From: Thalia democratica
Lineage: Eukaryota
Direction of reading: 5' to 3'
Length of the DNA stretch: 64,000 nt
NCBI GenBank assembly: GCA_965202585.1
Contig: OZ241831.1
Span: forward strand, 15,624,001 to 15,688,000
Shown here: positions 15,693-39,600 of the stretch, one piece after another
How positions within the stretch are numbered: position 1 is the stretch's first letter
How the letters are laid out: every line of letters begins with the position of its first letter
Position numbers and translations under genes: made by a program
Notes under the pieces: model-generated
What the model was told of the DNA's origin: nothing
Databases searched by the model: none
What the model saw: only the letters and a program-made list of their open reading frames with translations

Positions 15693-18600
15693 GTTAGTTT
15701 CAATTATTTTAAACATATATAGAAAAATAAAAAAGCGTTTTTAAGCATAAAGCTTGTCAATACTACATTTATTTTACAATACATGCTCACAATTGTATAC
15801 ACTTTTTTTAGATTTTAAACCATGTAAGTCTCAAAAAGATTGTCCTTCAACTCACAGATGCAACAGGGGACAATGCAGGTTAGTATTGCTATGTACTGTA
15901 TTCACAATAATAAGTTTTTTTGCTTTAACTTTTTCAACAACTTATAAGGTGTTTATTTTGTTTTCCTACAACATATTGTAACTTATTGTTAGAATTACAC
16001 AAACGAGTTGATAAATATCGAGTTACTATCAAAACTAATTTTTTAACAAAAGTGCTTACTAGATGTCCATACGAATACTTTGGAAAGAATTGTGAGGAGA
16101 AAATGACAATGTGCAACCCTACTCCCTGCATATCTGGAACGTGCAGTCTTGTGTACGACTCTCTCGGTCGCGAAGATTACGTTTGCCACTGTTACTCCGG
16201 CTGGACTGGTCAATAATAGTTTTTTCTAATATGAACATTTATTCGTATATAATATTGATAACATTTTTTATGTTTAGTATTCTTTTAATACTATAAACAA
16301 AATAAAAACTGCATAACGTTGCTTCTCGATTTTACTTTTTGTGTGAGTATTAAAAAGAATAAAATTAGCAGTAGTTCAAAAAAAAATCAGTTTAAAGTAT
16401 ACAGTATTTTTTCTACCTCAGGTATGGACTGCGACATTGAGGACCAGTGCAAACAGGACCCGTGTGAAAACGGAGGTTCCTGCTCCATGAACAACGACAC
16501 GTTCACTTGCTCGTGCAGCGAAGGTTACCATGGCGACACGTGTGCTAACGATGTCAACGAGTGTGAACCTAAAAATCCCTGCCAGGTATGCACAATCAAT
16601 ATAAAAATTATGAAAATTTTAACAATAATTGAAAGTTGTACTTGTAACAGCTGTAAATATAAAAAAATAAAGCAATGAATTCCACATATAGTCATATACT
16701 TAAAAGTTTTATTTACCGAATAAAATCATCGTTACGTAAATTCAGACAGCTTTTACCCTTGAAACTCAGTCTATAATTCAACTTAACTGTCGAATGGGTA
16801 TTTTTCATTTAGTACAAAACAAAACTTTTTTATTTTATTTACATAATTATCACTACAATACTTTTAAAAGCGGATGTAAAGTGTTTAAATAACTTAACTT
16901 TGAAAGTTGATCGAATTAGCTTTGTAACTGTATGAAAATTCGTTAAGTAACATCTTCTAAGTTGTTTTTAACTTAAGACTTTTATTGATTTGTGTTAACA
17001 AATTAGGCTGTCATGTCGCATAAGTACTAAAGCAGCAAGTAATATACGCAGGTTTACATAACCTTGATTTTATTAAAATAGAATTTAAGATTTGAACAAG
17101 AAAATAGATAATAATCTTTTAAATTAAAATAAGTAAAATAAATACATAGTTATACTATATAAACAATAAAAAGTTTATAGTAAATTGTTGTTGAAATTGT
17201 TCGTTGCTCAGCTAACTAATAAAAATTGATGTGTAGAAAATTACTTAAACACTAAGCACAAAATCATGTTTAAAACTTTGTCAGAACGACGGTGTGTGTG
17301 AGAACCAGATAGGGACGTTCACTTGCCACTGTCAGAAGGGATTCACCGGTCCCACTTGCGAGTACACCATGTTCAAACCTCGCGAAGCCAGCTGCAAGCA
17401 CAACATGTGCAAGAACGGAGGAACTTGCTCCATTGTCAGGGACAGCGGACAGGCCATTTGCAACTGTTTAGAAGGTTTGATCTGTTGATCTAATTAATTA
17501 TGATTTTTATTAACATTGAAAAAAAACTGTCTTAAATTGCAACAAAATAATACCCTTTTCGTATTTTTAAATTGAGTTAGCAAAAAAGATAAACAACTTA
17601 TACTTGATATAAATCGTTATTTATATATTTTATTAACAGACTTTCAAGGAGTATTTTGCGACCAACTGGCACGGTGCACTGCATCTAACTTTTGCAGGAA
17701 CGGAGGAACTTGTAAAGACGACCTTGGTTATGCTTATTGTGAATGCGAAGATGGCTGGCTCGGTTTGTTTTGTTAATACAACTTGATGCAAAGATGGGAA
17801 TTTTATTAATATTTTATATAAATACAGGAGAAAACTGCGAAAAAGACTTGGACGAGTGCACTACTTTTCCCAACTACTGCAAAAACGGCGCCACTTGCAA
17901 CAACTATTTAGGTATACTTAAAGTTTAAAAAAAGACGTTAAAAATGAGTTTTTTAAAGCTAAGCTTCTAAGTACAAATTAAAACTCAGTAATGAAAACAA
18001 CATAGAATATTTCAAGCAATGAAAATATAATTCAAGAACAAACTAAGTTCAATAAAAGTTTTCAACGTTGTTTTTTACTATTTTTTCATACCAACATAAT
18101 AGGAAGCTTCGAGTGCATTTGTGTGAACGGGTGGCACGGAATAGACTGCAGCCACAATGTTGACGATTGCGAGAACAACGGGTGCTTTGCCGGATCGACA
18201 TGCGTTGATGAAGTTGGTACTTTCAGGTGTGAGTGCCCTCCAGGAAAATCTGGTTGGTTCAAAAACTTGTAAAAGCTATGTTTTATGTACAACTTGTGTT
18301 GCAGGGTTTAGTGATTTTGTGTTTATAGTAAATTGATAAGGCTATGAACAAAAAATGTTTTACTTAATACTTAAAACCTTAACTATAGTTGTTAAAATAA
18401 CAGCTGATTTTATCAAAATTGAAACTTTTTACTTGTGTAACCTTGGTAACGTTGTAAATTACCAGGGTTTTTATGTCACCTTGACGACGCCTGTCACGGG
18501 GATCTGAACCCCTGCAAGGACGCTTCAACGTGCACAACCGAGAAAACAACGGGGGAGGCGATCTGTTCGAGCTGCCCCTCTGGCTATAGCGGCATCACCT

Positions 18601-21600
18601 GTCACAAAGACATCGATGAATGCAACAGTGGTTTGTCAAAAACTTAATTTTTAGTCATGAACATATAAAAAGTGATGGTATCATAATCTTTAATTTAAAA
18701 ATAATGCTAAAATTTAACAAATCATATTTACGTTACATACCAAGGACTAAACTAATCGTAATCTATATTCACAACAAGTGGTGAGTAACTTGAATGTTTT
18801 TTACCTTTTTACTTTCCTAGGACAAGCGATATGCGAGCACGGCGGCACTTGTGTGAACACGGATGGCAGTTTCAAGTGCATGTGCCATCCGGGATTCACC
18901 GGAAGTTTGTGCGAGCAGATCATCAACGAGTGCGATCCCGATCCGTGTCCTAAGAACACCTCCTACTCGTGCCTGGACAGGGTTGGAACTTTTCTGTGCG
19001 TATGCCACCCAGGTAGGAAAATTTGAAAACTTTAAACGTAACAAAAATGATTAGATATATTTTCTTCTACGTCAAAATTACTTTTACAATAATGTCGTGC
19101 TCTTATCAAACAAAACATACATTTTGCTAATTAAGTAGTTTGTTTCATATATTAATTATCAAAGCTGGTAATCAGTTTACCAACAGCTTTTACCGCTTAT
19201 TATGTATTAGGGTGATATGAACGCTACGAGTTCAGAGTTTAATTAAAAATTACCTGCTTGTAAAAACAAAAGATTTCAAAGCTTTTACTCGCTTATTCAA
19301 ATTTATAAAATGCGTGTTTCGGGTCATAGGTCGACTGTAAAACTAATAACAACATTTTTTAATTATGCTGCATCTGCTTTAATTTGTTTGACCTTTCAAC
19401 TTTGTACGTAAGCTTGTCAAATTTTACTATAATTAAAAATATCTTTTTTTAATATTTTAACCTTTAAGCTAATTGTAATTTACATTAACTTTAAGTACAA
19501 AAAGCTTTTCTGCAACTTTATGCATTGAATATACGCTTAAAGTTTTTGTTTACGCTTACTTAAAAAGCACCAAACAAGTCTAATATGTAATATAAATAAA
19601 ATAATATAGCTATAAAATATTTTTACACTTAAGCTTCTAAAAATTCAAATTTTTCAAACTGTCTTTTTTTTTGATAACTTTAACCGAAAACAAGCAAAAC
19701 AAACTTATTTCAAGAGATTGCCCTTTCACTAATACTTGAAAATAAAGCAAACGCAGCGGTGATAGTAGTGTGAGTTGATAAACAACTTCATGGTTGATCG
19801 GTGTGCTTGCTCCACACTGCTGCACACATGATTGTCTTTCATTTACATGTGCCCTTCCACTTTCCTAACAAAAAAAAAAAAAACATTAGATGCCCATCTG
19901 CTTTGCTTGAAAGTCTTTTTGTTTAGTTTTGTGTTAGGATTTGGCTCAGCTGTTGTGAAAATTAGTGACGGATGACGGCAAATGACTGTGCGAAGCTTGA
20001 TAGTTTGCGGTGCGAATTTCCTTTCATTCGCCAGCTACAACCATTTGAATTATCGAGGAATTTTAATACGCGCTGGGCACAGACTTTTGCCAAGTAGCGA
20101 ACCACACGCTCGCACCTCATATTTACACCTTATCCATATTTCACAAGGCTGGAAGCTCAGCACAACCAAAACAATTTAGCGGCTTTCGGTCTGGGCATAC
20201 ATACGAATATGTGTTAAAAAAAATTCAAACCGAGCGCGTCGTGTTTTGCCATTTCTTCTCGCCTTGCCTCTCGCACGACTGCGAGGAACAAGTGAAGAGA
20301 AAGCAGCTGGAAACTTCCTTCTCCTTTTTATCTTGCTTGCGAGTGGAAGTAATCGCCACCGACACTTGAAGAAAGCTCGAAGGTGCTTGAAATTGCGCTT
20401 TTCGCTCGTCGCACCTTAGCGAGGTGTAAGTCGTCGTTTGTTTAATTTTGCGAGTCAACCTTAATGTTTGTATGGCTGCCACGGCAAGCCTGTTTTTTAA
20501 ATGAGATGCCAATGACTTTAGTGTACATATTTCTTAGCACTTGAGCCTTTTGCAGTGTCATAATGACGCTCTTATCAGTGCACTGCAGTGCGAAGGAGAT
20601 TTTCGTATTCGTTATGTAATGAACAAGAAACGTAATCATCAAGCTGTTGATTTTCAAACAGATGTTGTTTTATCACTTGCGTTGTTAAAACACCTTATTG
20701 TAATTTGAACTGCTTGATATAATTATCAAAAACAACTTTATTTTTTTAAGTGCTTTTAGGCATTTTGAAAAACCAATTTAACCGTGAAAGCAATAAACTT
20801 TGCGTTTAAAGCAAAGTGTAACGAGATACAAAAATACTCTTACTGACTCAAATTTTATTACTTAAACGCTTATCTTGAAAATACGTCTACAAATTGCCTG
20901 AACTGAAAGCGCTACCCGTACCTATCTTTACATCAAGGGCATTTATGACATTAACACATCTTTTACAACTTGTTATGAAAATCTAATGACAAACGCATTT
21001 TTGAACGAGTTGCTTATCGAAGCCTTTGTTGTGCGCAGAAAAAAACGCTGATAAGTATCCGAGCCGCTGCTGTCGAGAGCATGCTTTTATTCAGCTGAGA
21101 TAAAAACGAAACTTGAACAAGCAGCGCAGCGGTCATCCTCAACATCTCTGAACAATGAAAAGTTTACAAGTTCAATGAAATAACAATTTTAGTCTACTGT
21201 TACCGGCTCAACTCAAAATTGCCCGAGGGTCGCACAGCCGTGCATACTGGCTGCTTGTTTGCGCTATTATTGTGCTCGTGACGATTTCAAATTTAAACTG
21301 TTTGTGTTATTCAAAAATTGCCCATTGAAGATATTTATAGAAGCCTTTGAAAGTTTGAGTTGCCTTATTGGTGCAATTTGCAGTTGACTTGAGTTTAATA
21401 AATATGTGATTTTAATTTAAAAGAAATGTTTTTGATAATTAATTGAGCGAGTAAATTGTACAAAAGTATGACAAAAACGGAAAACTGAATGAAAACAAGC
21501 TTAATTAAGCTGTATGGTAGAACTAATGCCAAAAAAAAAAAGAGAAAATGATTTTTAATTACACTCGAATAGTTAAAAATTTCTTAAAAAAGCTTAAAAG

Positions 21601-24600
21601 AGATAAGTTATACTTTTTTAAGAAAAGAAAAACAAATTCAAGCACTGTGCATTTAGCAAAAACACCTTTTAAAGTAATAAAGTTTTGAAAAAGTGAACGA
21701 TTTGGTTTGGTGATAAGTAACTCAAGTGTGCTGTTAAATAAACACGCAACTCATATCTCGAAGAAAAACGTTTGTTAAGGCCGAGTAAAAAAAGCACATA
21801 CTCAACTCTTAAAACAGACTTAAAGTTTTTTTTGAGACGAAATTGAGAAAATGTTCGCTCAATGTGTGTGGGTTTATAAACTTTTTATAATGTTATGCTT
21901 CGTTGAAAGATCTTCTATAAGTTTCCTACGTGCGTTTCGTCACAAAAGGCACAAGTCTCAGGCAGCCTGTTGAGAAGTCGTCGCTACGCGCAGCAGCGGT
22001 TGCCATGGAGAGAAGTCGTTGTTGGGGAGAATAACGGGGAGTGAAAGCAGGTGCAAGTTTATTAGTAGTGCTTCTTTGTGCTTGAAATGTTCTCATGTCT
22101 CGCGCTTTTGCCTTGCCAACTTAATCTGCGCTGATTCAATTTGCCTTTTTCAACTCCATCACCCGCCTTCCATCATAATTAGCGCTGATAGTTTACATAT
22201 TTCCCGCAACAATGTTTCAGTTTTGACCAAAACAAGTGGAAGCTAACATGAAAACAAAAATATTTTTTTCATTTGTTGAACTTTTTCTCAAACAAGCAAC
22301 TCGTGATTGAAGTGAGAAAACGCTAACGAGTCGGGTGATTCCAATTTCCAGTCTGAGAACTTTCTGCTTTTCACGGCCACCACACGCTCACACGCAAATT
22401 AAGGCTCTGATGTTCACGGCCACGATTTCGGGCTGCTTTTGATGTCGGGCTGCTCCGTTGCACGCTTAATTTGCTGCGGCTTTATTTGATGGAAGAAACC
22501 GTAAACCTTCCATCCATATGTATATATATTCGTTCGTAAATTGTTTTGATTACATTAGTAATTTTTGTTTGATGGTTTTCTGAAAGCTTTTGCTCGCAAT
22601 CAAAGTTAAAAGAGAATAAAAGCTTAAGGTTTGTTGAAAATTTTAATTTTTAACAGTTAATATTAATCAAAAACTCGACAGGTGAATTTGATTAATTAAG
22701 ACTTCAAAAGCACAAACCGTATACAAATGAGCGTGTTTTTTTTTAAAAAGAATAATGTTTGCACTTAAAAACTTACAAACTATATATGGACAATTTTCTA
22801 GGAAAACAAAGCCTGCTCAAATTTTTTTCTAATATTTTTTTATTTGAAACTCAACAGAGTTAAATAACAAAGCACAAATTTTACACAGGATACGAGGGAA
22901 AGTACTGTCAGAAGGAAATAGACGAGTGCAGGGACCTGCCCTGCTTGCACGACGGACAATGCATAGACGGCGTCGCATCATTCACTTGCGTTTGCCCCCG
23001 AGGTACAAGTTTCTATTGTTTACAGTCAGCGTCAATCAAACAGCAATCAGCGCGCTGTTTGAGCGGTAACTTTTATAAAACAAGCTTGAAATAAAACTAC
23101 CAAAGTAGTTAAATTTAATGTTTCGTTCATCGATTTTTTATCAATAGATTTCGATTATGTATCGCACTAGTTTAGATTCCCGAAGTGTTAAACTAATCCG
23201 ACTGAACTTGCTTCCGAAAAGCATGTTTTACGCGTGAATCTTGTTAAAGGAAGCGCAAAAAAGAGAGTTTCCGTGCGAAACTCTGCAGATTCTCACGTTG
23301 AAAAAACTCTGAAGCCGAGTCTCATTACGGATTCAGCACAAATTGTTCTATGTAGCAATGATCATCGAGGTATTATGACGTCACAGCGCGCGGCAGGTTG
23401 AAGTCGGGTGAGAAAGGAGCGATTTGAGTGCGGCAGATGTTTAATGCTTGAGAAGTTGCTAAGAAGTTGGTCAAATTCGAACTTCCCTCGCAAATTCACA
23501 TTCAGGATTCTTGTTATGGCCAAACTTAAAAAAAGAATTATCTAAATTAAAGAAACGCTATTCGAATATTTAAGAATATGCTCTCCAAGCTGGCCTCTTG
23601 TTTGCAGGTTTTTTAAATTTAAAACTTAAAAAAGCCTAAGATTTTGGAATTTAGTATAAGTTGTTAGGTTTTATTTTATCTCACAACTTTTATGTTGTTT
23701 AAATTCACTGCAACATGAAAAAAACATGAAAAGGGGTAAATTTACTTTAAAAACGTTGTTCAATCCATTTAAATGGCGTTAAAAAAAAAGCACAATACAC
23801 AGCCAATATTTGCAGTCTGATTCGTTTTACAACATCCGCTTGCGCACAAACGTGCAGTTCACACAAAAATAAAGATCTATCAGTCAACAAAAGCCCAGGC
23901 TTTCAATACAACATCGAGCTCGCTCGCTAGAGTAAACAAAAAGCCAATAAAGGGATTTCTTTTGCGCGATGAAAAGTCGCGTCCCCGCATGATTAATGCA
24001 AAACCTGAGCTGGAAAAAGTAGGTTTTCATATAAAGTGGCGAGCTGGACGCGAAAAGAAAAAAAATCACAGTGTGTGTGTGAGTGTGAGTAAGCCGCGCA
24101 GTCACGGCTGACTTAACGCGAACACTGCAGGAGATTTGGCTGACGCTGTCCTTTGCCTTTCGACTTTGCATCGCCTCACGCCAGCCAAATCCAATGAGAT
24201 TCGAAGCAAATCAGTCCTCGCTCCGAAAACTCGCCGATCGGCTTAATTTAGACAGATTGAAGGTAAATTATTAGCTCGGCGCCTCGGATTTGCAGAAATC
24301 GCCGAATTTCGTTACTGGCAGTTTGTTTTTTTTTGTTGGTACGCACATCGGCGGTTTCGTCTGTCTGCAAGTTGCTTATTGGCCTCTGTGTTTTTTCAAG
24401 CTAACACGCACAATTAGCGATTTAAACTTGCTTTTGAGCGGATTTAGTTAAGCACCATTTCAGTTTGATAATGCCCCTTGTTTTCCAGCAAAAAGTTCTT
24501 TTGAGTTTGAGCACAGTATAATAACTAATTTAGGCAGTTTATTTTTGTTATCTATTCATCTTCAACTTAAAATATGTAGCACTACTGAGAACAGTTGCTA

Positions 24601-27600
24601 CAATTTTACTATTCAAAAGTCTTTGTTACACAGGTTTTAACAGTAAGCATATATTAGTTGATAAGGCAATTTTATAAAGAATGTAACAGAAAACTTGCAT
24701 TTTTACATGCTCAAAGTTTTCAAACATATTCCAGTAAAAAAAACACTAGCATGTTTTATATGCTCGCGTTTAGTACAGCCCTTCCTCACAAATAACTAAG
24801 CGAGCGACACTTTATTAGCTGAGCTGAATTTCAGGTTTTCTATTGCAGATCGTGATGCTGATAGAAAGATTATTGTTATTAAAATTCACCTTGAAAATAC
24901 CTCGCTTCAGTGTTTAATAACTAAATAATTGATCGATTAATCTGGTGAGATATTTCTGTGTGAAAGATTTCTTGGTGTTAATGATTTTTGTGCTGTACAT
25001 GTAAACTTGTATATTGAAGTTTGTTAGAAATAGTTCACACTAATTAGTAATTTAGACTATTTTCTCTTACTAGTTATTTTTTGAGTTTGTATCAACACGT
25101 TATACTTGTACGGTTTTTTAATCAGTTTAATAATAATTTATCGGTTTACAAATGCTTTTCAACATAAACTTCACAATTTAAAAAGTCTAAGTTATAAATT
25201 AAAAAAATATTAATGAACACAAACCAAACTTATACACTCACCCAATTAAGTTTATACGCTCACCCGATTTAACTTCCACCCTGACAACCAACTAATTTCA
25301 CCCTGGCAACCAACAAATTTGCAGGGTTCACCGGGGAGACGTGCGAGGTGAACATCGACGACTGCGCCTCCACCCCGTGCCACAACCACGTCAGGTGCAT
25401 CGACGGGGAGGACGACTACCTGTGCGAGTGCAAGCCGGGGTTCACGGGGAGAAACTGCGGGACCGACATTGACGACTGCTCCCCCCAGCCCTGCCACTAC
25501 GGCAACTGCACGGACGCCGTCAACGAGTTTGTTTGCATTTTGAACTTTTTAAAGTTTTCAACTTTTTCATGAGACGTGATGTTTCTCTTTAATGCATAAT
25601 TTTTTCATTTTTTGTACAATTTTTGTCAGATTTCAATGCACAGATTTTCACAAACTAAGCTAAAGTAAATTAATTTGTGTTTTTTTTGTTATCAGTAAAA
25701 TATAATATTATAAATATATTCGCTTTAAAGCTTACTTATTTGTGAAAACAGTGTCTTTGTAAAGGCTTTTACAAAAAGTATCGGTAATTAAACGTTGAAA
25801 CTCAACAAAATTAGTAGCACATTTGTGCTGCGACAATAAAGTTTAAATTGACTATATTAACTCTTGAGCTATTTTTACTGCCAATTTTTCTGCTGCTTAA
25901 ACTCTGCATGTGGTCGTTAAACGCTCGAAATTTTTACGACTCGAAATAGCAAACAATATGTGCTTGCTTTTGAGCAAGTTTTTATAGCTTCAATGTGCTG
26001 CTTTCACTTTAGAATACCAAGTTTTTTATAGTCTGCTTTTCTAAAATTGCTACAATGAATACACTTTTAACAATACTCTCGTGCGAACTTCTCAAAACTT
26101 TATAGACTCTTTTATTTGAGCTGTCGAGCTGAGATACTTTGCTAAAAATATCTATTAAAAAAAAAAAAAATTTTTTGAGCATTTTACTTATAAAACTCTG
26201 AACGTTGTTCTGTTAACAAGATATTTTAATAAACAGCACAAAAAAAAAAGAGAATTTTTTAAAAAGTTCTAAAATTTTTAAATATAAATTTAAACTTTAA
26301 GTATAATGCCTTTTACGAAATCAAATTCGCTCCAAAAAACTAAACCAACGTTTTCACAGTTTCATGTGCACGTGCGAGCCGGGATACACGGGAAGATACT
26401 GCGAAAGCGAGATCAACGAGTGCCAGTCGAACCCGTGCCACAACGGCGGAAGGTGCATCGACGGCAAGAACTCCTTCACCTGCGACTGCCCGGCCGGCAC
26501 CAAAGGAGACAGGTTTGTGTGTGAAATCTGATTAGCATTTTTACGTGGGTGCTGCCACTCGCGCTTTGAGTGGCTAACATGATTATAATAAAAAGTATAA
26601 TAAGGCGCCAAATGAAGCGCTTGTTAAAGACACTTGTGTATTAATTTCAATTTGGTCAATTTCGTTAATCCGTGATCGCGCTAAACCCCCTCGAATTAAT
26701 GGCATTTCCCAGTACAACACAACATGTAAATGCGATTAATCGCTTAAGAACCCTTTTGGGATTTTGTCACTTGGACGGCGGCCAATGAACAGTTGTGATG
26801 CACCGACAAACTATTTTCCCTTCAACTAGTTAACAAATATGTACGGCAATAGCATGTATTGCGGGCCTTATTGCGTGGGAAACGTGCGCGTTGGGCTTGA
26901 GAACTCGGCACAACAAAAACAAAGTGCTACTCACATGAACTGATTGAGTGCTGTGTGAATGCGTGATGGCAATGAAACAGTTGCTGATGCAGTCGGCTGC
27001 TGGTGGATATGCGCGCTGGCGATAACAAACCGAAATGCTCATTATTATTCATTACGCCTTCCACACACACATACAAGTAGAAAAAATAAAACAAAGGGGA
27101 GATTAAGGGAGATGATAATGGGTCGATATTCTCTGCGCTTCACCTATGAGATGATTAATGCAACGACAACCATGTTTATTTCCATTGCCCGTTTTATACT
27201 TGAGAGTATCCGATGATGAATAATAAAGCTTGTTTTGCTGTGAGATCCGATAAGACAGCTGCTTTGCGCGATCTTTTTAATTTAAATGTGTACTTTGAGC
27301 GGATTACTTAAATTTGTTTAGCTAAATTCAAATGTTACCTTTTTTTAAATGTTAAAATTAATACCGTTTGTAGATGTTCTGTTTTTAGTAAAAAATCATT
27401 TTAAACTTGTTTATTTATCATTTCAACCGGATGCGGCAACAATGTGATCGATTTTAACGCATTTTATTTTTTAGGTGTGAGATAAATATTGACGACTGCG
27501 TAGGAAGTCCTTGTCGAAACGGCGCCACTTGCTTGGACTTGCTCAACGACTTTTCATGCTCCTGTGTCAAGGGCTATGCGGGTGAGTGGTGAAAAAATAA

Positions 27601-30600
27601 TAACGAAAATTGTTTTAACGAATCATTATTAATTATGGTGTGTATATAAATTTTGCTAAAACCACATATTCTTTTCAAGTTCGATTTTTTTGTAGGTTCC
27701 TTGTGCGAGCACGAAATAGACGAATGCCAGTCGAGTCCTTGTGTTAACGGAGGAACTTGCATCGACGGTATCGGAGGGTTTACATGCCAGTGTCCCCCCG
27801 GTAATAATTTTTATAAAAGTCTAAAAAATAAAATTTGCATAAGTTATATACGTATAAACCATTGCTCAGTTTTTATTGACTTTAAAATGTTTAAATTGAG
27901 ATTTTCACTTTGGATAAAACTTATAAAACGATAAAGCTTACTTATGAACAAATTTACAAATATAAGCTTTGATTTCTAAATAACAAGAACACCTTTCATT
28001 AAAAAAAATAAGCTGAATTTTTTCACAGGAAATAATAAACTTTGATTGAAATACAAAAGTATATAATAAAAAGTTTTCGATTTTCAATGCTTTAGTCTTA
28101 CAAAAAATAAAAGTAAAAGTAAAACTATTACTATTAATAAGCTGAGTAGTAATATAGTTAAAGTTTGTTGCATTTAGTTAAACCACTTTGTGCAACATAA
28201 ATTTTACTTACGTAAAAATTTCTATTTTTATATCAGTCTTGATTGGCTATAAGTTAAGAAATAAATTAAGCCAACCTTAAAGACAAATAATTATTACAAA
28301 AAATGTAGCTTCGACTTTCTATTGCAACTCGCAGTTAACTAAATTGCGCCATAACCAGTTCTGTTGGGAAAAAACTCGCATTCTTTTGTTGCAAGTTACT
28401 GCAGCAAAATTAACAATTGCCGTTTAGTTGATTGCGGATCAGTTTACATTGGCGTCTTCCGCTGACTGCACACCTTTAGTTTCGAATTGCCGGTCACGAC
28501 AAAGGATGTGTAATTGGATATTTTCTCGTGCTTTGTGTGTTTTCAACACCGGCTTTGCTGGAAAAGAAAAATTAAAAAATATAAATATGAAGCCACAGCT
28601 GGCGCTTTAATAGTTTTCCTTTTATATTGTTTAGCTTGCCTTTTCTTAGAAGTCTACATGGGTTTTAGTGTTGTATAAAAAAGATGTTTTCTTTAATCTG
28701 ATTTGTTTCCCTTTTTACTTGTTTATAAACTAATTCAAAAAACTTTGCAACTTTTTATTGTTACTGCTAACTTTAACGACCGTTGATAAAATCAATCATA
28801 ATTTCGATTTAACGCGAAGTTCAAACGCCGTTAAACTCGCAGTAAAACCGCTCCACTACTTTGTTAAAGTCATGCATTTTTGTGTGCAAAAGGCAAGAAT
28901 TTTAATGCCCTGTTATTATAACTTTATGGTTGGTATTTAAATTTCTAGCTTGTTTGTGCGCTCTACGCGATTTGCCATTCTGTGATTTATAAGCCCGTTT
29001 TAGTGTTCACAGCGTGCGCAGTGCGTAGTAATTTCTAGTCAATGTTTAACTACTTTTTTCGTGCACATGCAAGTCTGCCCTATAAAACGTGTTTGCTTTG
29101 ACGGGAAGCTCGACGGAGTTCAAACAAGCTTTGTGACGTAATTTTTTAAACAAACAGGCTTCAAGGATTCCAGGTGCTACAGGGAAATAAACGAGTGCAA
29201 CAGCGACCCGTGCCAAAACGGCGGAATTTGTCACAACAAAGTGAACGAGTCAGTTTTAACTTTGTTGAATTGCGTGCAAAAGCTTGAACTGTTTAAATAG
29301 TACAAAATACAAATTTATTGTATTTTATAGAAAGGTTAGTTTGCGGTTGAGCTTTTTTAACCTTGCAAACATTTTTGAAACTAGCTTTGTTGATATTTTA
29401 GAATATTAATCTAAAATCTATAAAACAAATTAAAAAAAAAAGTTCAAACTTAAAAGAAAACACTTTTATTTTTTAATCTAGTTATTGTTTTTTTTTCCAA
29501 ATATCTAGTAACTCTCCGAACTACTAAACACACAACTCTTAAAAACAAAAATTTCATCCATACCCATTCTAAGACCATTTTAACAGTCTGTTAAACGACT
29601 TTCTATTCGCAGATATTCTTGCCAATGTCTGCCCGGCTTCCACGGACTGAATTGTGAGTACGACACTGACGAGTGCCGGTCCAATCCGTGCCACAACAAG
29701 GCCACCTGCGTGGACAAGGTGAACGGGTACGAGTGCCGGTGCCAGAACGGGTACCAAGGTGATTTTTCTTAAATTGAAATCCGCGTATGCTAAAACATGT
29801 GTAAAAATAGCAGTAGTTTTGTTTTCATCAAAGTTTGTTAAAAGGTTGACAAGTTTGTTTTTATACTGGTTACATGCTAAAAATGTTTTGGAAAATTTTT
29901 AATGTTTTTTTAAAGATTAAACAAAAATAAAACTTTACAAAACTTTTTCAATTAAACTAAAATGAGTGTTTTTAGAATTTCAAAAATAAATGTTATTTCT
30001 AAGCCAACTTTTTTCATGCTTGTTTTTTATTTTAATACAATTACACGAACCTTACAAACTTATAACAATGGGTTTAAAAATTTCAATAAAAAACAGGTAA
30101 AAACTGTCAAATACAAATAGACGAGTGTGAATCGAACCCGTGTTTAAATAATGGCAAATGCTACGACTACATCGGAAAGTACAAGTGCCAATGCCCACTA
30201 CAATATTCTGGTTTGTTTATCTTTAAAATAAAATATCTACATTTTATTTCTAGTTGTCAAAAACAATGTAATCCGCTCTTTAACAACTTCCAAACCCAAC
30301 AACATTTTCCTAGTGTAATTTGAAAACTTCTCTGTGTAGCTGCCAAACCACAAAAAATTGTATTAGTAATCAGAGGTGTAAACATTGGCTCAGGTATTGT
30401 GCTGAACAAAAGAAAAACATCCGTCTTAATGTGACACTCGGTCAATTTATCATTATAACACCGATCGTCTGCGCCAACTAAAACCATTGTTTTTGTTTTC
30501 ACCTTTTGTTGTTACTTTTCGTTATCGTTTAAATTAATTGACTGAAATAAGTTGTTGTTTTTTGTTTAGTAAACTGTGTACGGTTCCCAACAAAAGACCA

Positions 30601-33600
30601 ATCTCATCAAAATTTAGCTGTTTTGTTGTTAATTTTGCACGTCAATATTAACTGTTTATTGTTACCTGTCTCGCCTAGCAGTTTTATTTGTTTACCGAAA
30701 AAGCTAAAATGAAAATACACAAACAGCTTTTGTTTTGCATTTAGCTGTTTGTTGGCAAAACAATTTTTTATCTCATCTTAACTTGATTACACCGTTTGTT
30801 GATGTTTATTTGCTTTTTAATTACCCGTTTACAAAATTAAGATGCGCATAAGTATCGGAAATTTAAGAAATTCAAAGTTTGTTCGCAGTTAAGTCGGTGA
30901 TGCTTGGCAACCGCAGTCGGAGGAAATATTGCGGGCAGAATTATTGCGGTTGTCATGTAAACGGGGCGAAGCGTGTGAAAGTGGCGCGCTACAAATTAGA
31001 TTTCGCCGGAGGCCTTTCGTATGTCTGACCCATATTTAGGATGATTTTCCCACTTTGTAATTTTTTTGTTTTGTGTATTGAAGTAAAGTGCTTATTTAAA
31101 AAAAGGAAATACGTAATTTATTCTGTAAAACTTTTTTTATAATTTTTTTTTGGTCAATATTTTTTATATTTTGTATAACACTTTTTATTGTTTCTTAAAC
31201 AAAAAGTTTATCAAAATTCAAACTAAAAAATTGGACACTGTTTACAACAAGAGCGCTGAAACAAACTTGTTTTTAACACTTTACATTCACCAGGTGAACG
31301 GTGCGAGCACAGACTCACTCCATGCTACCCGAGTCCTTGTAGAAACTCAGCAGAGTGTCAAGTCACCAAGGACTATAAAGGCTTTATCTGCAAGTGCCTG
31401 CCTGGATACCAAGGTAAAAGTCAAGTTTCGTTGAACCATTAAGCTGTCATTTCAAACCTACTTACAGCTATTGGTTTTTTGCGCAATAAGTTTGCTCAAA
31501 TTTCATTGCTCGAGAGCGTGTTCTAACAAAAGCAACAAAAATACTCAAACATTTTTTTGACTACATTTAAAAAAATTAGGTTCAACTTGTAGCGAGGATA
31601 TAGATGAGTGTGGGAATTACCCTTGCATGAATGAGGGTCGTTGCATCAACCACCAGGGAGGGTACAAGTGCGACTGCAGACCCGGTTTCCAAGGCGACAG
31701 GTGCCAAATTGACGTTGATGAGTGCTTGTCAGGTTCGTATTCTAATACTACCACATATGAAACATTAAAGTTTAAAAATTAAAGAGTAGCAACAACTATT
31801 TTGATGCTTCATATACAAAGCCAGACAAAATACCGTCAACAGACCCGTGCATGAACGGAGGTAACTGCGTGGACGAGGAAAACACGTACAGGTGCGAGTG
31901 TAGGGCAGGGTACAGTGGTCAGAGATGCGAGTACGATGTGGACGAGTGTGCCAGTAACCCGTGCAGAAATGGGGCCAAGTGTACCAACTACCTCAACTCA
32001 TTCGTATGCACCTGCCCTGTAAGTTTTACCTTTTGATAAGTTTTGTTAAAGTCTAATTTACTGAACTAAAAAAATACTATTGTCCTACATCTGGTTTAAA
32101 ATCCTGTTATATTATTATAAAAAATGTTTGTTTGATTATTTAAACAGAAATGTTGAATACAAAAACATTAATACAAGCTTGTTGTGTTTTGAAGTTGCGC
32201 ATTTGAAATGTAAAATCACACAAACAAAGCAAGAAGAGGTGTTTCGATAGTGAAACAATTATTGGCTTATTTTTATAGTTTTTTAACTTTAATAATAGCT
32301 ATGTAATACTTTTATGTGAAATGGGCTTAAAACTAAAAATAAAACTAAAAAGTTTTCAATTTGAAAATTTACTTCTGACATAATTTAAATATTCAAATAA
32401 GTTTTATACTTACTATCAAAAAGATATAACAACACATATTTCATGAATAATTACTTAAGTACTTTTGACTAAGTCTTATTAAAACTGTATCTTAGCAAAC
32501 TTAACTGAAATTATATACTTTTTAGAATTACTCAAATAAAACTTTCTTGCTTATAAATTTAAAAGTTGCTACTTAATTCATTGGATTTTTACAAATTTAA
32601 GTTTATTTTTATATTATTAGTAAATTCATCATATAGTTTTCTTATAATTTTTTTTAAGCTACTTAAATGCTTTATGCACAAAATCACTGAAAAATGTTTA
32701 AATTTTCTAAATGCTATAACAAATTTTATGTAACGGAAGGAGTACTAAGCATCGAGTATTTATATATTTACTAAAATTAAGTTTTTAAAAACGTATTTAA
32801 TTGCAATAATTGGTTTCTTAGAACTTTTTTTCGTAAACTTTATTCTTAGTTTTGTTTACTTTGAACGAGAAAAAGTTTTTCTAATGTTGCAACGATTGTT
32901 ATTTGATCAACATTTATTTAGTATACTCAACTAAGAACTATAGTTTGTTTTTTTACTTTATTTATCTTTTTGAAATGAATACCGAATTAAGTTTTTACGG
33001 TTTTAGTCAGCTCTAAAAACTGCTAAGGATTTAATGAAAAACTAAGATTTCATGCTTTTAAGTAATTTTTTGAAAATTTTTGTAAAGGTAGAAAGTTAAA
33101 AAGTAGTTTGAACATTAATTAAAAATGCACATCTTTATAAGCGATTATTTTTAAGCATATTTATAAATAGCATTTCATGAAAAAGTGCAAACAAAGTATA
33201 TAATAAATTTTTTGAGCTCTTTTTTTGATTAATTTGTGTGTAAGTTATTTCAAGTGCGACTAATGTTTATTTCAAGATATTTAAAACTCAAGTATAAATA
33301 GCAAAATTGCACCTTTAAGCTTTTATAATAAATCGGTCATCATCACTACAAGGCACCTGCATCGATGAAAAAGTCACTTATCGCGTGCATAAGTGTTCCT
33401 TTAATAAAATATTTGCTTTTTGATAACGAAACGAATAAAAGGCCCATTGCAGCGTTTAGCTTGTCAACGGCAGTAACAATTTCGCGATAAAGCATATCAG
33501 TAATTGATTTTATCAAGTTAAATTGTAAGCTGCTGTAGCTAGTTTCAAAGAAAATTTGTCGTTAAACGCTTTTTTTAGTTTACTTTTGAATGTTTATTTA

Positions 33601-36600
33601 TGTGTAGCGGTTTTTAACTCTCTCAACTCTACATTAAGTAGTCAATGAAAAAATATTAAAAGGATTTTATACTTTGTTTTATAGTTTTAAACAGTTAAAG
33701 TAGTTTTAAAGACTTTCAAAGTATTTTAATAGCAGTATTAACATATTTAAAATTCAAAAACTTTTTAAACATAGTTTATACCTTTAAAAAAAATTTAATG
33801 TATTTTTTTTTTTAATTTTTTAGTAATTTGATAAGTTCAGCCTCTTATACACACAGTTATTTTTTAACAAAATGTTACAGCCTGGATACAAAGGACTGCA
33901 GTGCGAAATAAACATAGACGAGTGTAGCAGTGGTAGTTGCATAAATGGAGGCACATGTAGAGATGCCATAAACTCATTCACTTGCGAGTGTACTCCTGGT
34001 TTTAAAGGTTTGAACTTACAAAAAAAAATTTACAAAAGGTGCTAATTGCTTAGTGTACGTAAAAAATAGTATACATGTGTTCTATTTTGTATCTTTTTTA
34101 CCAACAATAGTGTCTATCAATACTAAACAAACTGTAATTGTGATTATAGTTTTTTAAATAAAAGTAAAATACATTGTTTTATTATAAAATAAATCAATGT
34201 TTGTGATAACTTAGTTTATAGCACCTGCATTTAAATAAGTTTCAGTTAAATAACTTGCACAAATTTATTACTAATAGTTTATAGTTACTTTTGGTCAAAA
34301 TCATGAGATTTTTTAGTTTATAACAATAAATGACTAACACTAAATATGAATCACAAAAACAAATAACTGCTAACTTAGCGTGAAAGGTTAGCATATTCCC
34401 TTATGGTTGTAAATTAATGTTTTGGCGGTAATCTATACTGTTGTGAATCATCAATTAACAATTTAATTGAAATTAAAGTTAGTCTAGTTTGTAAAACAAT
34501 TTAAGCATTTTAAAGTTCAGAAAGTTAGCAAACTCTAAATGTTTTATGATGATTTTATGCTACAGGAAAGCATTGCGAAATTGACGTTGACGAGTGTCTG
34601 TCAAACCCTTGCGAACACGGAGCGGAATGCGTGAACGGAAAAGATTCTTACAAATGCATTTGCCCTGCCGGTTACCAGGGCGAACGTTGCTCGGTCAGTT
34701 CACTTTCAGAATGTTTTTAATATCTGTGTTTAAAGTTTTTTCTTTTTTATTTTTATAATTTATTTTATCTATGTTTTAAAGTTTTCTATAGGAGCCTGTC
34801 AAAATTAGCTCAAAGTTTTGTTATATAGAGAATATGTATCAAATTTTAAATTCCTTAAATACATTTTTCAATACTGTACAAATTTTAGTCGTTGGTGAGT
34901 AGATGCGACAAAGATGACTCGCCTTGCATCAATGGAGGAAAATGCATACAGACCGGAACTGATTTCAAGTGTGCGTGTAATAACGGGTTTACCGGTCGAA
35001 TTTGTGACGTTCCCAACATTTCTTGTCAGTCCATGGCCGAAAAGAAAGGTAAACTGTTATGAGTAAAATATATTCCAATGATGTCAATCTTCAATACTTT
35101 ATTAGCTGCAAAAACTTGTCATTTAAAATTGTTCGTCAAAAATAGTTTTCTTAAAATAACAATATAACAAGTAAAACATAATGTTAAAAATTCAGATTAT
35201 TATATTTTTTGATTGTAGGGGTGGCAGTGTCGGATGTGTGCATGCACGGAGGAAGGTGCATCGATGAGAACCTCACTCACAAGTGCGAGTGCAGCAGAGA
35301 GTACGAAGGTGATTACTGCGAAGTTGATGTAGACGACTGTTACTCCAATCCGTGCAAGAACGGAGGTACCTGCAAGGATTATGTCGGAAGGTTGGTGAAA
35401 ATTTCATATCATTTGTTATAAAATTTGAAAAAAATATTATAAAAGCGTTTGAATATTGTTTTATTTAACTAAGCTAAAAAAAAATTGTTTGCAAAAAAAA
35501 AGTTAAACTGGGTTGTTAATGGGAAGATAAACACGAGTTTATCTTCCCATTAACAACTTAGTTGAAGTGTGTTGATTCGTTAACACACAGAAACATATGT
35601 TAGTACAATAAAGGAAGATTACTGTAATATTTGTTTTTAATTATATTCGGTGAATTTATTTCACAAGGATCTTTTGTTAGCAAACGATTAAACCTATATT
35701 TTGAACACTTATACTTTTAAATTAATAAAGTTACAAAAGTAATTTTTTACCAATTTATATTACAAAACTTAAAGCTCATAGACCTATTTGTTTATTTTTC
35801 TTAATATTGTCACTATATTTCAATAAAAGGAATTTTATCAATTAAGACATATTTTCCCGTGGGGTATAAAGCATTATAAAATATTACAACTACGTATTTA
35901 ACTATGCTATATTTGTTCTAACTTAAAAACTTGTATAACTATTATTTATAATTCCTGCGATAATTTTAAAGTTTACTTTTTTAAATATCATCTACTTTTT
36001 TTTAGAAGTAAATTAGAAATTTATCGACTTTAAGGCAACTAATGAAATATTGAAACTTGCTTTATAGCAAATATTTAAGATTTCATATAATTTATAATAA
36101 GCAATTTATAACCAAATTCATCTTAATACCTTGCGTTGATAAAAATCGATTTACGCTGGAAGCTTAACAAAAACGTTAACTGAAACAAAATCATAAACAC
36201 ATTCCTACATTTAGTTGATTTTGAAAAAATTCAAAAGAACCTATTAGAAACTAAAAAAAATCCCTGAACAAAAACTAAAATACACAAATTGCAGGTACAC
36301 ATGTCAGTGTGCGGCGGGATACACTGGTCCGACGTGCACCGTGGAAATTGACGAGTGTTCATCAAATCCGTGCCAGCATGGCGGATCGTGCGTTGATCTC
36401 GTTGATGATTTCTTCTGCGATTGTCCTCCCGGAACGCTCGGTTCGTTTTTGAATGAAACTTTACTAAAACAAAAATCAATCACGGTTTAAGATTGTTTAA
36501 ATGTAGTTTATAAAGGGAAGTTATATTATACATAATTTTGTAACTAAAATGCCGATAAAAGTTTTTAAGCTTAAGGTATAATCTTCATGATACAGTTTTT

Positions 36601-39600
36601 TTTCATAAACAGTCTAACTACCGATATGCTTTTATTAAAGGTCGTTTCACTACAACGGACTTTAAGTAAGTTCAAACTCTGTTTAAGGTGTAGTCATTTT
36701 GAAGCTTATGTCATGCTCGCTATTAACTACTGATTTTTTTTTCTTCAGCCAAGTTAAAAAAACATGCGACGAGATAAAACAAACACGGTATGTATGGTAA
36801 GGAAAAGCGAGTTCAAAAAAGTTCAAAACACTATGCAGTTGTAAAAGTTACTCGGTGACGACTTTCGCTTTTATTTATTTATGAGTTTAGAGCTCGTTAC
36901 ACTTAAAAATTGAGGTTTTCGCGGCGATTTTAAGCAACTTCAACGGTAGCTCAAACAAGACGAAAAATGTTAAAAGAACTTAAAAGTTTAATAAAAAAGT
37001 TAAAAGAGTTCAAATGCAACACTTAAAACGTCCCAGCCAAGTTATGATGGATGCAATCTATGATGAAAAACTTTTTTCATAAATGAACTTTTTCTAAGGC
37101 AAAGTTAAATAAATATGATAAAGTGCAGAACTTTAGATTAGCTATTTGTCATTTTAAAGTACGTTTCATGTGTAAACTTACACTTTTCGATGTAATTGAA
37201 AACCCAGGCATTTCACGATGTGTTGGTTTCAGCTTGCTAAGTCAACAAAACTTCCTTTTCATTAAATAAAAAATGGCAAAATAGTATTTTTTGTTAAAAA
37301 TAAAAGTACGAAAACAAATAGAAAGCTAAAGTTCAAAAAAACAGGTTTCATTTTTTAGAGACAGTAACTTCAATTTTTTTAAGTAAAATATAATAAAACA
37401 AACGTTTCTTTACAAGTTCAACGTATCATGATTGTTTAACTTATACCTCGATTATCTGCAGGCAAACGTTGTGAAACGGATATCGACGAATGCGCGGACA
37501 ACCCGTGCCAAAACCACGGAAGATGCCGCAATCTGATTGGTAGGTTCAAGTGCGACTGTCGTGACGGGTTCGTTGGCGACCGCTGCCAGGGAGATGTCGA
37601 TGAGTGCGCATCTAACCCTTGTAGTGAGGAGGGTTCTGTGGAGTGCATCGAAGGGATCAACTACTACACTTGCAAGTGCAAACCTGTTAGTTTATTACAA
37701 CACTTTTGATGTTTATTTTCTGAATTTGTACCTAACCTTTGAACCTCACAGAAAAGAACTTAAGAAAAATTAATTTTATCAATATTTTTACACTTTTTGG
37801 CGTTTCCGCTTAATTAATTTTCTTTTACAACTTAACTTCATTTCATTCAAGTTTTACAAAAGCTTAGTAAATAATTTATAAACATATCTTAAAGTTTAGA
37901 AATAATGAATAATTTCATGAAGGGTTATTCTGGTAACCAGTGCCAGATAAAGACTTCTAGTTGCGCAGCGAGGCCTTGCAGAAACAATGGAAGATGCGTT
38001 GACAGCATCACCGAAACTGCTGGCTACAGGTGCATGTGCGAGAAGGTGAGATATTATTTATTAACTAACTTCTTTTGTACCTAATATTACCTATTTTTTT
38101 AAATGAAAAGTTACCTAATCCTGCTTGACATAAATAATTTTGTCAACTTTCAGGGTTTCAGAGGACCGAAGTGCGAAGAAGTAATGTCCAAGTGCGAAGT
38201 CGGAGACCTGATATGCTACAACGGAGGCACTTGTGTTGTTGACATGTGCAACTGCTTGAGTGGCTACGGTGGTATTGAGTGTCAGTACAAAATAAAAGAC
38301 CAGCCCGCCGCCCCCGGAAAAACTGTGCCCGACCCTAAAAAGCTACCTGCAGTTGGTAAGTGTATTATTTGTTAATTTTTCGTGTCGCAAAAAATTTATA
38401 TGATCAAACTATAACGGTCATATTGATTACAGAAAAGAAATGCTTAGTTGCCGAGTGTGCGAGCCTTTCTCACAACGGAGTCTGCGATGTAAGTTTTGCG
38501 AAAATGATTTACTGAATACTTGTTCATAAACACAAGCTACAACATAACTCTTTTTTCTAACAGCGTCAATGTAACTCGTTCGAGTGTGAGTACGACGGCG
38601 GCGACTGCTCATTGGGTATTGAAAATCCCTGGCCCAAGTGCAACACCGCCCTCATGTGTCAGGAGCTGTTTCACGACGGAAGTTGCGACCAGCAGTGCAA
38701 CACTGAAAACTGCTTGTTTGATGGATTCGACTGCGAAAACTCAGCCGAGGAAGATACTTGCCCGTAAGTTGTAACTTTTTGATTTAATTTTGATTTCTTG
38801 CATTTTTTTTTAACTTTTAGCATCAATAAATGTTATTTGCCAAAGAATAAAGTAGCTTTTGTTATGTTACAAAATAGTAAGTATTGGGATTATGATTTAA
38901 GAATATGTGTGAAACTTGAGTTTTTATCTTTCAATTTTTTGAGTTGTAAAAGAACTGACAACTAGATTTATCGTTTTATTTTTTAAGGAATCCTTAATGA
39001 TGTAGACTATTGCATTTAAATTTAATTTAATCTGTTTTTTTTTTGTACTGCTGGTTTTTTTCTTGAAATTTATTGACTTAAGTAACAACTTAATACTTTC
39101 AAATAGCATTTTCAGTTATTCTTTTTCAGCTTTTGTTATGAAACAGAGTTATTTATTTAAGAAACAACAACTTCCTGTGGTACTATTTTTAGTACTTTTT
39201 AATAAACATAAAGTTTAGTTATGTTTAAAACTTCATAACTCTTTGCTCAAATTACAATAACTGTTATTTTATTAAGGAGGTTTTTATAAAAACATAATTT
39301 ATTACAAATCTTAGTATGTCTTTTGTTTAACAAAGACTAACAATATTCTATTAGTGTAAAAAAGAACTAGATTTATCTGTTTACCTTTCTTATCTATTAA
39401 ACTGTGTGAAATTAAGGTCTTAAAAATTTGTAAATATTTACTTTACTCGTAGTCATTGTTCAGAAATTCGATCGTTTGTTTTGATTTTAATAACGAATGC
39501 AACACTTTAATAGTATAACTTTACCATCAGTTGTTTAGTTACATCTTTTTATAGATATTTTTTTACAGGACCAAGTACGACAAGTATTGTACTGACCACT

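Follow-up and report, generated by a model that had tools for sequence, protein, structure and literature searches.

The stretch analyzed here, a window of 64,000 nucleotides from contig OZ241831.1 of the pelagic tunicate Thalia democratica (positions 15,624,001 to 15,688,000), carries on its + strand a long succession of short exons encoding EGF repeats, downstream of which lie LNR and ankyrin exons, and these exons read together as a Notch receptor gene; the G+C content of the window is 29%. Our focus is a single repeat of this receptor, i.e., the equivalent of EGF12, whose loop between the second and third cysteines (C2 and C3) is longer than in the orthologues compared and departs from the textbook sites for O-fucose and O-glucose. 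The 28 EGF-coding exons were spliced by hand, the criterion being that the C5-x8-C6 spacing was preserved at every junction, and they encode 34 EGF repeats, fewer than the 36 of vertebrate Notch. In this gene model, no signal-peptide exon could be placed, and the precise 3' boundary is undefined. Downstream of the array, Pfam identified three LNRs (PF00066, E = 1e-18 over two stretches of the first LNR exon, and E = 1e-11 on the second). The exon with the NODP match also encodes RRKR, a hydrophobic helix, and LWVPEGF (the RAM W-x-P motif), and PF06816 (NOD) gave 0 matches in the exon-wise scan, the controls likewise giving 0, so that this model is uninformative. Pfam Ank and Ank_2 were found on the first and third ankyrin exons, and the ANK region is 65% identical to that of vertebrate Notch, while the exon 10 peptide matched EGF_CA and EGF. 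As judged from this domain order (EGF array, three LNRs, NODP, transmembrane/RAM, and ANK), the gene is a canonical Notch receptor. Because the ANK exon, LNR exon, and exon 10 peptides each match this locus alone in the 802-Mb assembly, we rejected the possibility of a paralogue with a canonical EGF12; the genome holds no second copy.

The focal repeat is the 11th of the 34, and since one N-terminal repeat (EGF3 or EGF4) is absent relative to the 36-repeat prototype, it corresponds to EGF12. The neighboring repeats correspond in order to human EGF5 to EGF13, and a phmmer search of the PDB placed the exon 10 peptide best on EGF11-12 of NOTCH2 and NOTCH1 (E = 3e-28 to 1e-24). The resulting alignment has a single 2-residue gap, which falls within the C2-C3 loop of EGF12 (cpkntsysc vs. 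cqnd--atc). These correspondences mark the repeat as the main ligand-binding one in the sole Notch receptor detectable in this pelagic tunicate.

In mammals, EGF12 bears O-fucose on Thr466, which is extended by Fringe, and in Drosophila the EGF12 O-fucose site is needed for Delta-driven signaling. This sugar is regarded as highly conserved, as a direct ligand contact, and as a main target of Fringe. In T. democratica, positions 18931-18972 (+) read TGC GAT CCC GAT CCG TGT CCT AAG AAC ACC TCC TAC TCG TGC. The strict POFUT1 motif, C2-X4-S/T-C3, is missing from this repeat, with six residues (PKNTSY) lying between C2 and the Ser that adjoins C3, and the POGLUT1 motif, C1-X-S-X-P/A-C2, is missing as well (C1-DPDP-C2). 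The Ser immediately before C3 is retained within a six-Cys EGF fold, as folded in the predicted model. In addition, the loop contains an N-X-S/T sequon (N-T-S, where X is not Pro), a predicted site that is one of six sequons in the 34-repeat EGF region. A sequence-only reading of this DNA had claimed as much, namely that repeat 11 is the EGF12 equivalent with seven residues between C2 and C3, that the strict O-fucose and O-glucose consensus sites are both gone with Ser replaced by Pro, and that N-T-S appears in the same loop, and each of these claims was borne out by the codons themselves, by the phmmer gap, or by the orthologue alignment described below. The coordinates of all features are collected in Table 1.

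Table 1. Features of the Notch locus of T. democratica, in coordinates of the window
Feature	Position	Strand	Basis
EGF-coding part of Notch gene, 28 exons	15812..38372	+	Hand-spliced, stop-free, 34 EGF repeats
CKNGATC, strict O-fucose motif of EGF8 equivalent	17878..17898	+	Splice model and repeat parse
Exon 10: EGF11 equivalent after C1, and EGF12 equivalent to three residues past C5	18821..19012	+	AG/GT borders, phase 1 at both ends
CEHGGTC, strict O-fucose motif of EGF11 equivalent	18832..18852	+	Alignment and repeat parse
Ile at first Ca-ligand position of EGF12 (human Asp452), I-I-N-E-C	18919..18921	+	Alignment: D or N in 14/14 orthologues
C1 to C3 of EGF12 equivalent, C1-DPDP-C2-PKNTSYS-C3	18931..18972	+	Direct reading; insertion vs. 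NOTCH1/2 and 14 orthologues
7-residue C2-C3 loop of EGF12 equivalent	18949-18969	+	Direct reading
N-T-S sequon (AAC ACC TCC) within lengthened loop	18955..18963	+	Direct reading; unchanged by any listed RNA variant
Ser codon adjoining C3, aligned with human NOTCH1 Thr466	18967..18969	+	HMMER alignment
Exon 11: end of EGF12 equivalent (YEGKYC, C6 at 22906-22908) and most of EGF13 equivalent	22889..23002	+	Splice model; RNA loose ends at 19013
Remaining Notch gene	38561..45881	+	tblastn chain to Notch proteins, with Pfam LNR, NODP, and Ank on exon peptides
LNR exons	38561-38764, 39576-39713	+	Pfam
NODP/transmembrane/RAM exon	40331-40720	+	NODP at E 3.5e-11 (Pfam)
ANK exons	42738-42929 and 44341-44547 (Pfam Ank and Ank_2), 43184-43297, 45666 onward	+	tblastn/Pfam

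We compared this region with 14 orthologous EGF11-12 pairs (fish Notch1, turtle and newt Notch3-type, horse and snake Notch4, herring Notch1-like, fly, tick, nematomorph, Trichinella, and two more). The C2-C3 loop of EGF12 has 5 residues in all 14 orthologues and 7 in T. democratica; in a regex survey of 436 proteins, all loops following an 'EH..' EGF11 likewise have 5 residues. The residue before C3 is Ser or Thr in 13 of the 14, with Ile in a 292-aa herring fragment, and the O-glucose Ser is also present in 13, whereas Pro occupies this position here (S458P). The herring fragment ('Notch1-like' P0275) is an observation in its own right, in that its EGF12 reads CQNNAIC, i.e., a 5-residue loop with no Ser/Thr acceptor.

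By alignment, the altered loop is part of a broader remodeling of the EGF11-12 surface that faces ligand and calcium. More specifically, three invariant or near-invariant positions are changed (in human numbering, P422I, R448L, and D452I), and further residues differ from human NOTCH1 (E473T, Q475L, I477V, and M479H). E415, E450, L468, and D469 are retained, as are F436 and S435 of EGF11 and the PGYEG motif after C5. Of the human residues, R448 lies within the groove of the DSL domain, P422 and D452 border its interface, and L468, D469, and I477 contact the MNNL domain of the ligand (PMC7922208). The later N-E, D, and F positions of the calcium-binding EGF consensus are kept, and the first is Ile; since D452 is the first residue of the EGF12 calcium consensus, calcium binding by the EGF12 equivalent may be weakened. 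In human NOTCH1, the binding of calcium to EGF12 is required for ligand binding. These ligand- and calcium-contact changes are absent from the sequence-only reading, and, on the alignment, they place the glycan sites within a wider change.

Searches beyond this alignment set returned little of relevance. A representative-library search with exon 10, ranked by EGF repeat number, recovered vertebrate, nematode, nematomorph, and other Notch sequences, none closer than ~50%, and no tunicate Notch, and a homologue search with the 63-aa exon peptide gave no candidate within its length range. A profile built from a Trichinella Notch segment and six window exons found distant EGF proteins (≤46% identity), MAFFT having stacked the exons on one repeat, and a metagenome scan for tunicate Notch gave three unrelated EGF loci. 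Finally, a literature search turned up no account of either the EGF12 loop or the O-glycan sites in any tunicate Notch.

We also considered the predicted structure of the exon 10 peptide, using an AlphaFold model built from a 15-row alignment (mean predicted local distance difference test score, pLDDT, 90.5). The model superposes on 4XL1, 4XLW, and 5UK5 with template-modeling (TM) scores of 0.86-0.89 and a root-mean-square deviation (rmsd) of 1.3-1.4 A, and across NOTCH1/NOTCH2 EGF11-13 entries the rmsd of the predicted fold is 1.3-1.9 A; exon 10 is thus predicted to retain the NOTCH1 EGF11-12 fold. A beta-hairpin (strand 48-53 of the exon peptide) begins in this model at the Ser before C3, as it does at the acceptor Thr in EGF11 and in human EGF12, and the extra residues are placed in the loop preceding the C3 strand.

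With regard to expression, the stretch is present in genome runs labeled as two organisms (0.94-0.97 of sampled words), and parts of it are contained in ocean metagenomes and metatranscriptomes. RNA contigs from three ocean metatranscriptome runs, mapped on 17285-19100, cover exons alone, with joints at 17474/17640, 17762/17828, 17911/18103, 18252/18466, and 18630/18821, and thereby confirm 5 junctions of the 28-exon model; they continue past 19012 into exon 11 letters. No indel in exon 10 was observed across the genome runs and the three RNA data sets. Exon 10 is therefore transcribed and spliced as modeled, and the RNA contigs agree with it.

The RNA contigs diverge from the window by 1-6%. 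Among the coding differences, 29 of the 32 listed are synonymous and the other three are R-to-H, D-to-E, and K-to-R; these 32 are the best-supported differences, a further 38 less supported ones not being among them, and the ratio should be read as a strong indication rather than a full count. Two variants fall within the focal loop, and both are silent (CCT>CCC and TCG>TCT, the latter in the Ser before C3). Our data thus provide a strong indication that exon 10, the loop included, is under strong purifying selection. Just outside the repeat, an ocean RNA variant at 22909-22917 (exon 11) is non-synonymous, reading Q-N-E vs. Q-K-E in the window after C6 of EGF12.

Turning to the remaining repeats, the strict O-fucose motif is kept in 14 other repeats of the 34-repeat array, including six consecutive ones directly N-terminal of the focal repeat (the EGF6, 7, 8, 9, 10, and 11 equivalents), and the O-glucose motif is kept in 12. 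CEHGGTC in the EGF11 equivalent and CKNGATC in the EGF8 equivalent were both read as the sequence-only reading had given them. Compensation by the EGF11 site was considered and rejected: because the 'EHGGT/S' motif of EGF11 is also found in Notch4, fly, nematomorph, and another marine Notch, it is widespread and not a lineage-specific compensation. A motif gain concerns the EGF10 equivalent (exon 9, 18468-18629), where the strict O-fucose motif C-KDAST-C is present and is absent from human EGF10. The EGF11 equivalent also fits the POGLUT2/3 pattern, for which the motif is worded C3-x-N-T-x-G-S-F-x-C4, with the Ser435 counterpart kept in its C3-C4 loop; Ser435 of NOTCH1 EGF11 bears O-glucose (PMC7922208).

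The enzymes that act on these motifs are encoded in the genome. POFUT1 is an intact, intronless 372-aa open reading frame (ORF) with E = 2e-95 to mouse/human POFUT1, and its closest named relatives are from the tunicates Phallusia, Clavelina, and Ciona (47-49%), with other marine sequences at 90%, 69%, and 55%; this agrees with a tunicate placement of the animal. This gene, at C5:65.345 Mb (L009 1426-2541), is a single uninterrupted 372-codon ORF in an intron-rich genome and may be a retrogene that replaced a split gene. Fringe is likewise intact (a 332-aa ORF that retains both the DDD and the DDC motif; E = 1.5e-52 against Manic Fringe), and POGLUT-type exons are present. There are two tandem intronless Fringe genes ~3.2 kb apart (C1:71.434-71.438 Mb; L001 1306-2304 and L002 1306-2304), and in one of them an in-frame TAA splits the ORF into 220 and 111 codons, making a young pseudogene or an allele possible. 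With Fringe, POFUT1, and many acceptor sites kept, 14 of them strict-motif repeats, the term 'Fringe-independent' used in the sequence-only reading cannot describe the entire pathway.

On the ligand side, published tunicate genomes contain, alongside a single Notch, between one and three DSL genes that evolve fast (PMC5882950). We found one DSL ligand; by its MNNL exon it is nearest to JAG1 (E = 5.5e-13), and it keeps 'KEY', as in JAG1, where DLL4 has 'KHY' (His64-Tyr65). Searches with PF01414, PF07657, and PF21700 gave this Jagged-like locus alone and no Delta-type ligand, although an exon-wise search sets a lower bound and is no proof of absence. Two other sets of candidates were discarded, namely weak DSL matches at C9:32.36-32.42 Mb (L029-L033), which are tandem MEGF/laminin-type EGF units (C-P-x-G-Y/F-Y/F-G-x-x-C ...) rather than Notch ligands, and a candidate at C1:70.08 Mb, which is a generic EGF/mucin gene.

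We propose that an in-frame insertion of six bases added two residues to the original five of the C2-C3 loop (PKNTSYS, now 7 residues) and that nearby substitutions would have removed the O-glucose Ser and created the N-T-S sequon. The O-fucose sites described so far fit C2XXXX[S/T]C3 (PMC11990869), and the POFUT1 groove buries roughly a third of the surface of the EGF repeat; for these two reasons, a 2-residue bulge beside the acceptor, possibly with an N-glycan, is likely to impair fucosylation of the EGF12 equivalent. Moreover, since POFUT1 reads the folded loop, in which the acceptor Ser lies six and not four residues from C2, O-fucose on EGF12 is most likely absent or added only poorly. 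We give this reading as a whole about even odds. At EGF12 of T. democratica, the Fringe-tunable, ligand-contacting sugar of flies and mammals would probably be absent or weak, and the loop Asn is probably N-glycosylated on the same face, while POFUT1 and Fringe would still act on the 14 strict-motif repeats, the EGF6-11 equivalents included. This lineage-specific rebuilding of the surface that meets ligand and calcium most likely reflects co-evolution with the DSL ligand, which evolves fast in tunicates, as the literature suggests. That the N-glycan replaced the Fringe-tunable O-fucose at the ligand contact, with Fringe control moved to the EGF8-11 equivalents, we consider unlikely. The 'rewired glycan code' of the sequence-only reading accordingly stands in part: the motif loss, the sequon, the expression, and the selection are borne out, but O-fucose may still be attached, given the retained Ser before C3.

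Indeed, several points weigh against our interpretation. The Ser before C3 is at the canonical strand position in the model, and the POFUT1 of T. democratica may still use it; it is because this Ser remains in the same beta-strand position as the acceptor Thr that we can only infer the loss of O-fucose. The O-fucose consensus itself is empirical and derived from mammals and flies. The Tyr of 'KEY' in the Jagged-like ligand is a fucose contact in DLL4, and its conservation would fit a sugar that is still present. Furthermore, the loop N-glycan is a predicted sequon, the co-evolution with the ligand is drawn from the literature, and the selection count comes from the best-supported differences.

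In an alternative reading, the site still works, i.e., POFUT1 recognizes the folded repeat and attaches fucose to the Ser before C3 even with two extra loop residues, Fringe extends the sugar, the glycan code at EGF12 would be functionally unaltered, and the spacing rule is too narrow. The Ser adjoins C3 and lines up with Thr466, in the AlphaFold model it starts the same strand as the EGF11 acceptor Thr, its codon varies synonymously alone, and neither POFUT1 nor Fringe is disrupted. The JAG1-type 'KEY' persists in the ligand where His64 and Tyr65 of DLL4, together with Thr114, touch the fucose on T466 (PMC7922208), and T466S is reported to be tolerated in mammals (PMC6781419). Set against this are the C2-X4-S/T-C3 spacing obeyed by the sites described so far (PMC11990869) and the extent of burial in the POFUT1 groove, given which a 2-residue bulge beside the acceptor likely matters; a co-translational N-glycan on the adjacent Asn would also hinder access of POFUT1. 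On balance, we view a functional site as possible but rather doubtful.

Relaxed constraint offers another explanation, to which we assign a low probability. According to this, the EGF12 sugars became dispensable, perhaps with signaling carried mainly by a Jagged-type ligand, so that the motif decayed by drift, the N-T-S is incidental, and the sequence is kept for folding. The alteration of several other near-invariant interface residues, the Jagged-like nature of the sole DSL ligand found, and the fast evolution of tunicate DSL ligands (PMC5882950) are compatible with such decay, and in the fly, Serrate binding is enhanced once EGF12 is deprived of its O-fucose site, with removal of its O-glucose site giving no phenotype (PMC7922208). 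Nevertheless, the strong current purifying selection on exon 10 extends to the loop, the adjoining run of six O-fucose motifs argues that the glycan system matters to the receptor, and the lower-bound nature of the Delta search does not establish the absence of Delta.

An artefact (mis-assembly, a pseudogene, or an unused exon) is highly improbable, as no point was found to support it, and against it stand an ORF stop-free across 28 exons, RNA contigs spliced at the predicted borders with no exon 10 indel in any of four runs, a synonymous to non-synonymous ratio of 29:3, and the lack of a second copy in the genome. An alternative exon in intron 10 was likewise rejected, since there is no EGF-like exon in the flanking introns. 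Intron 10 (19013-22888, 3.9 kb) is the largest intron hereabouts and contains several 40-95-codon ORFs on both strands, and it may hold a repeat or a mobile element. As a further observation on gene structure, the 27 Notch donor sites (15878-38045) are weak 5' splice sites beyond the GT, with GTTTG at 7 of the 27 and GTTGGT or GTTCGT at 4, and many Notch exons terminate in phase 1 within the Gly codon of the P-G-x-x-G motif.

Our preferred interpretation, i.e., an EGF12 equivalent with absent or poor O-fucosylation, can be set beside known systems. Compared with mammalian NOTCH1 and NOTCH2 EGF12 (PDB 4XL1, 5UK5, and 4CUD), the repeat occupies the same position and the EGF11-12 pair is ~48-53% identical, but the loop has 7 rather than 5 residues, C1-X-S-X-P-C2 is absent, and an NTS sequon is present. 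The fly keeps a strict CQNEGTC in the same repeat, whereas in T. democratica the motif is naturally absent and a Jagged/Serrate-type ligand alone was detected; a Rhagoletis fragment (P0198) shares CEHGGTC in EGF11. The closest engineered counterpart is the mouse Notch1 12f allele (Thr466Ala), which removes the EGF12 O-fucose and is described as hypomorphic (PMC6781419, PMC2865454). In both, this loop no longer offers the acceptor its canonical surroundings; unlike 12f, the tunicate state is natural and selected, it occurs in the only Notch gene, and it pairs a retained Ser with loop lengthening and a new sequon. Ciona, Botryllus, Botrylloides, Molgula, and Oikopleura resemble T. democratica in having a single Notch gene and one to few fast-evolving DSL ligands (PMC5882950).

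Collectively, the only Notch of this tunicate lacks the textbook EGF12 motif in a genome that retains POFUT1, Fringe, and numerous other sites, and this amounts to a natural experiment. It bears on the strictness of the POFUT1 spacing rule, given a 7-residue loop with Ser before C3, and on how much of the Fringe effect requires EGF12. It would also supply a specific case, on the receptor side, of the co-evolution between receptor and ligand that has been proposed in tunicates from the ligand side alone.

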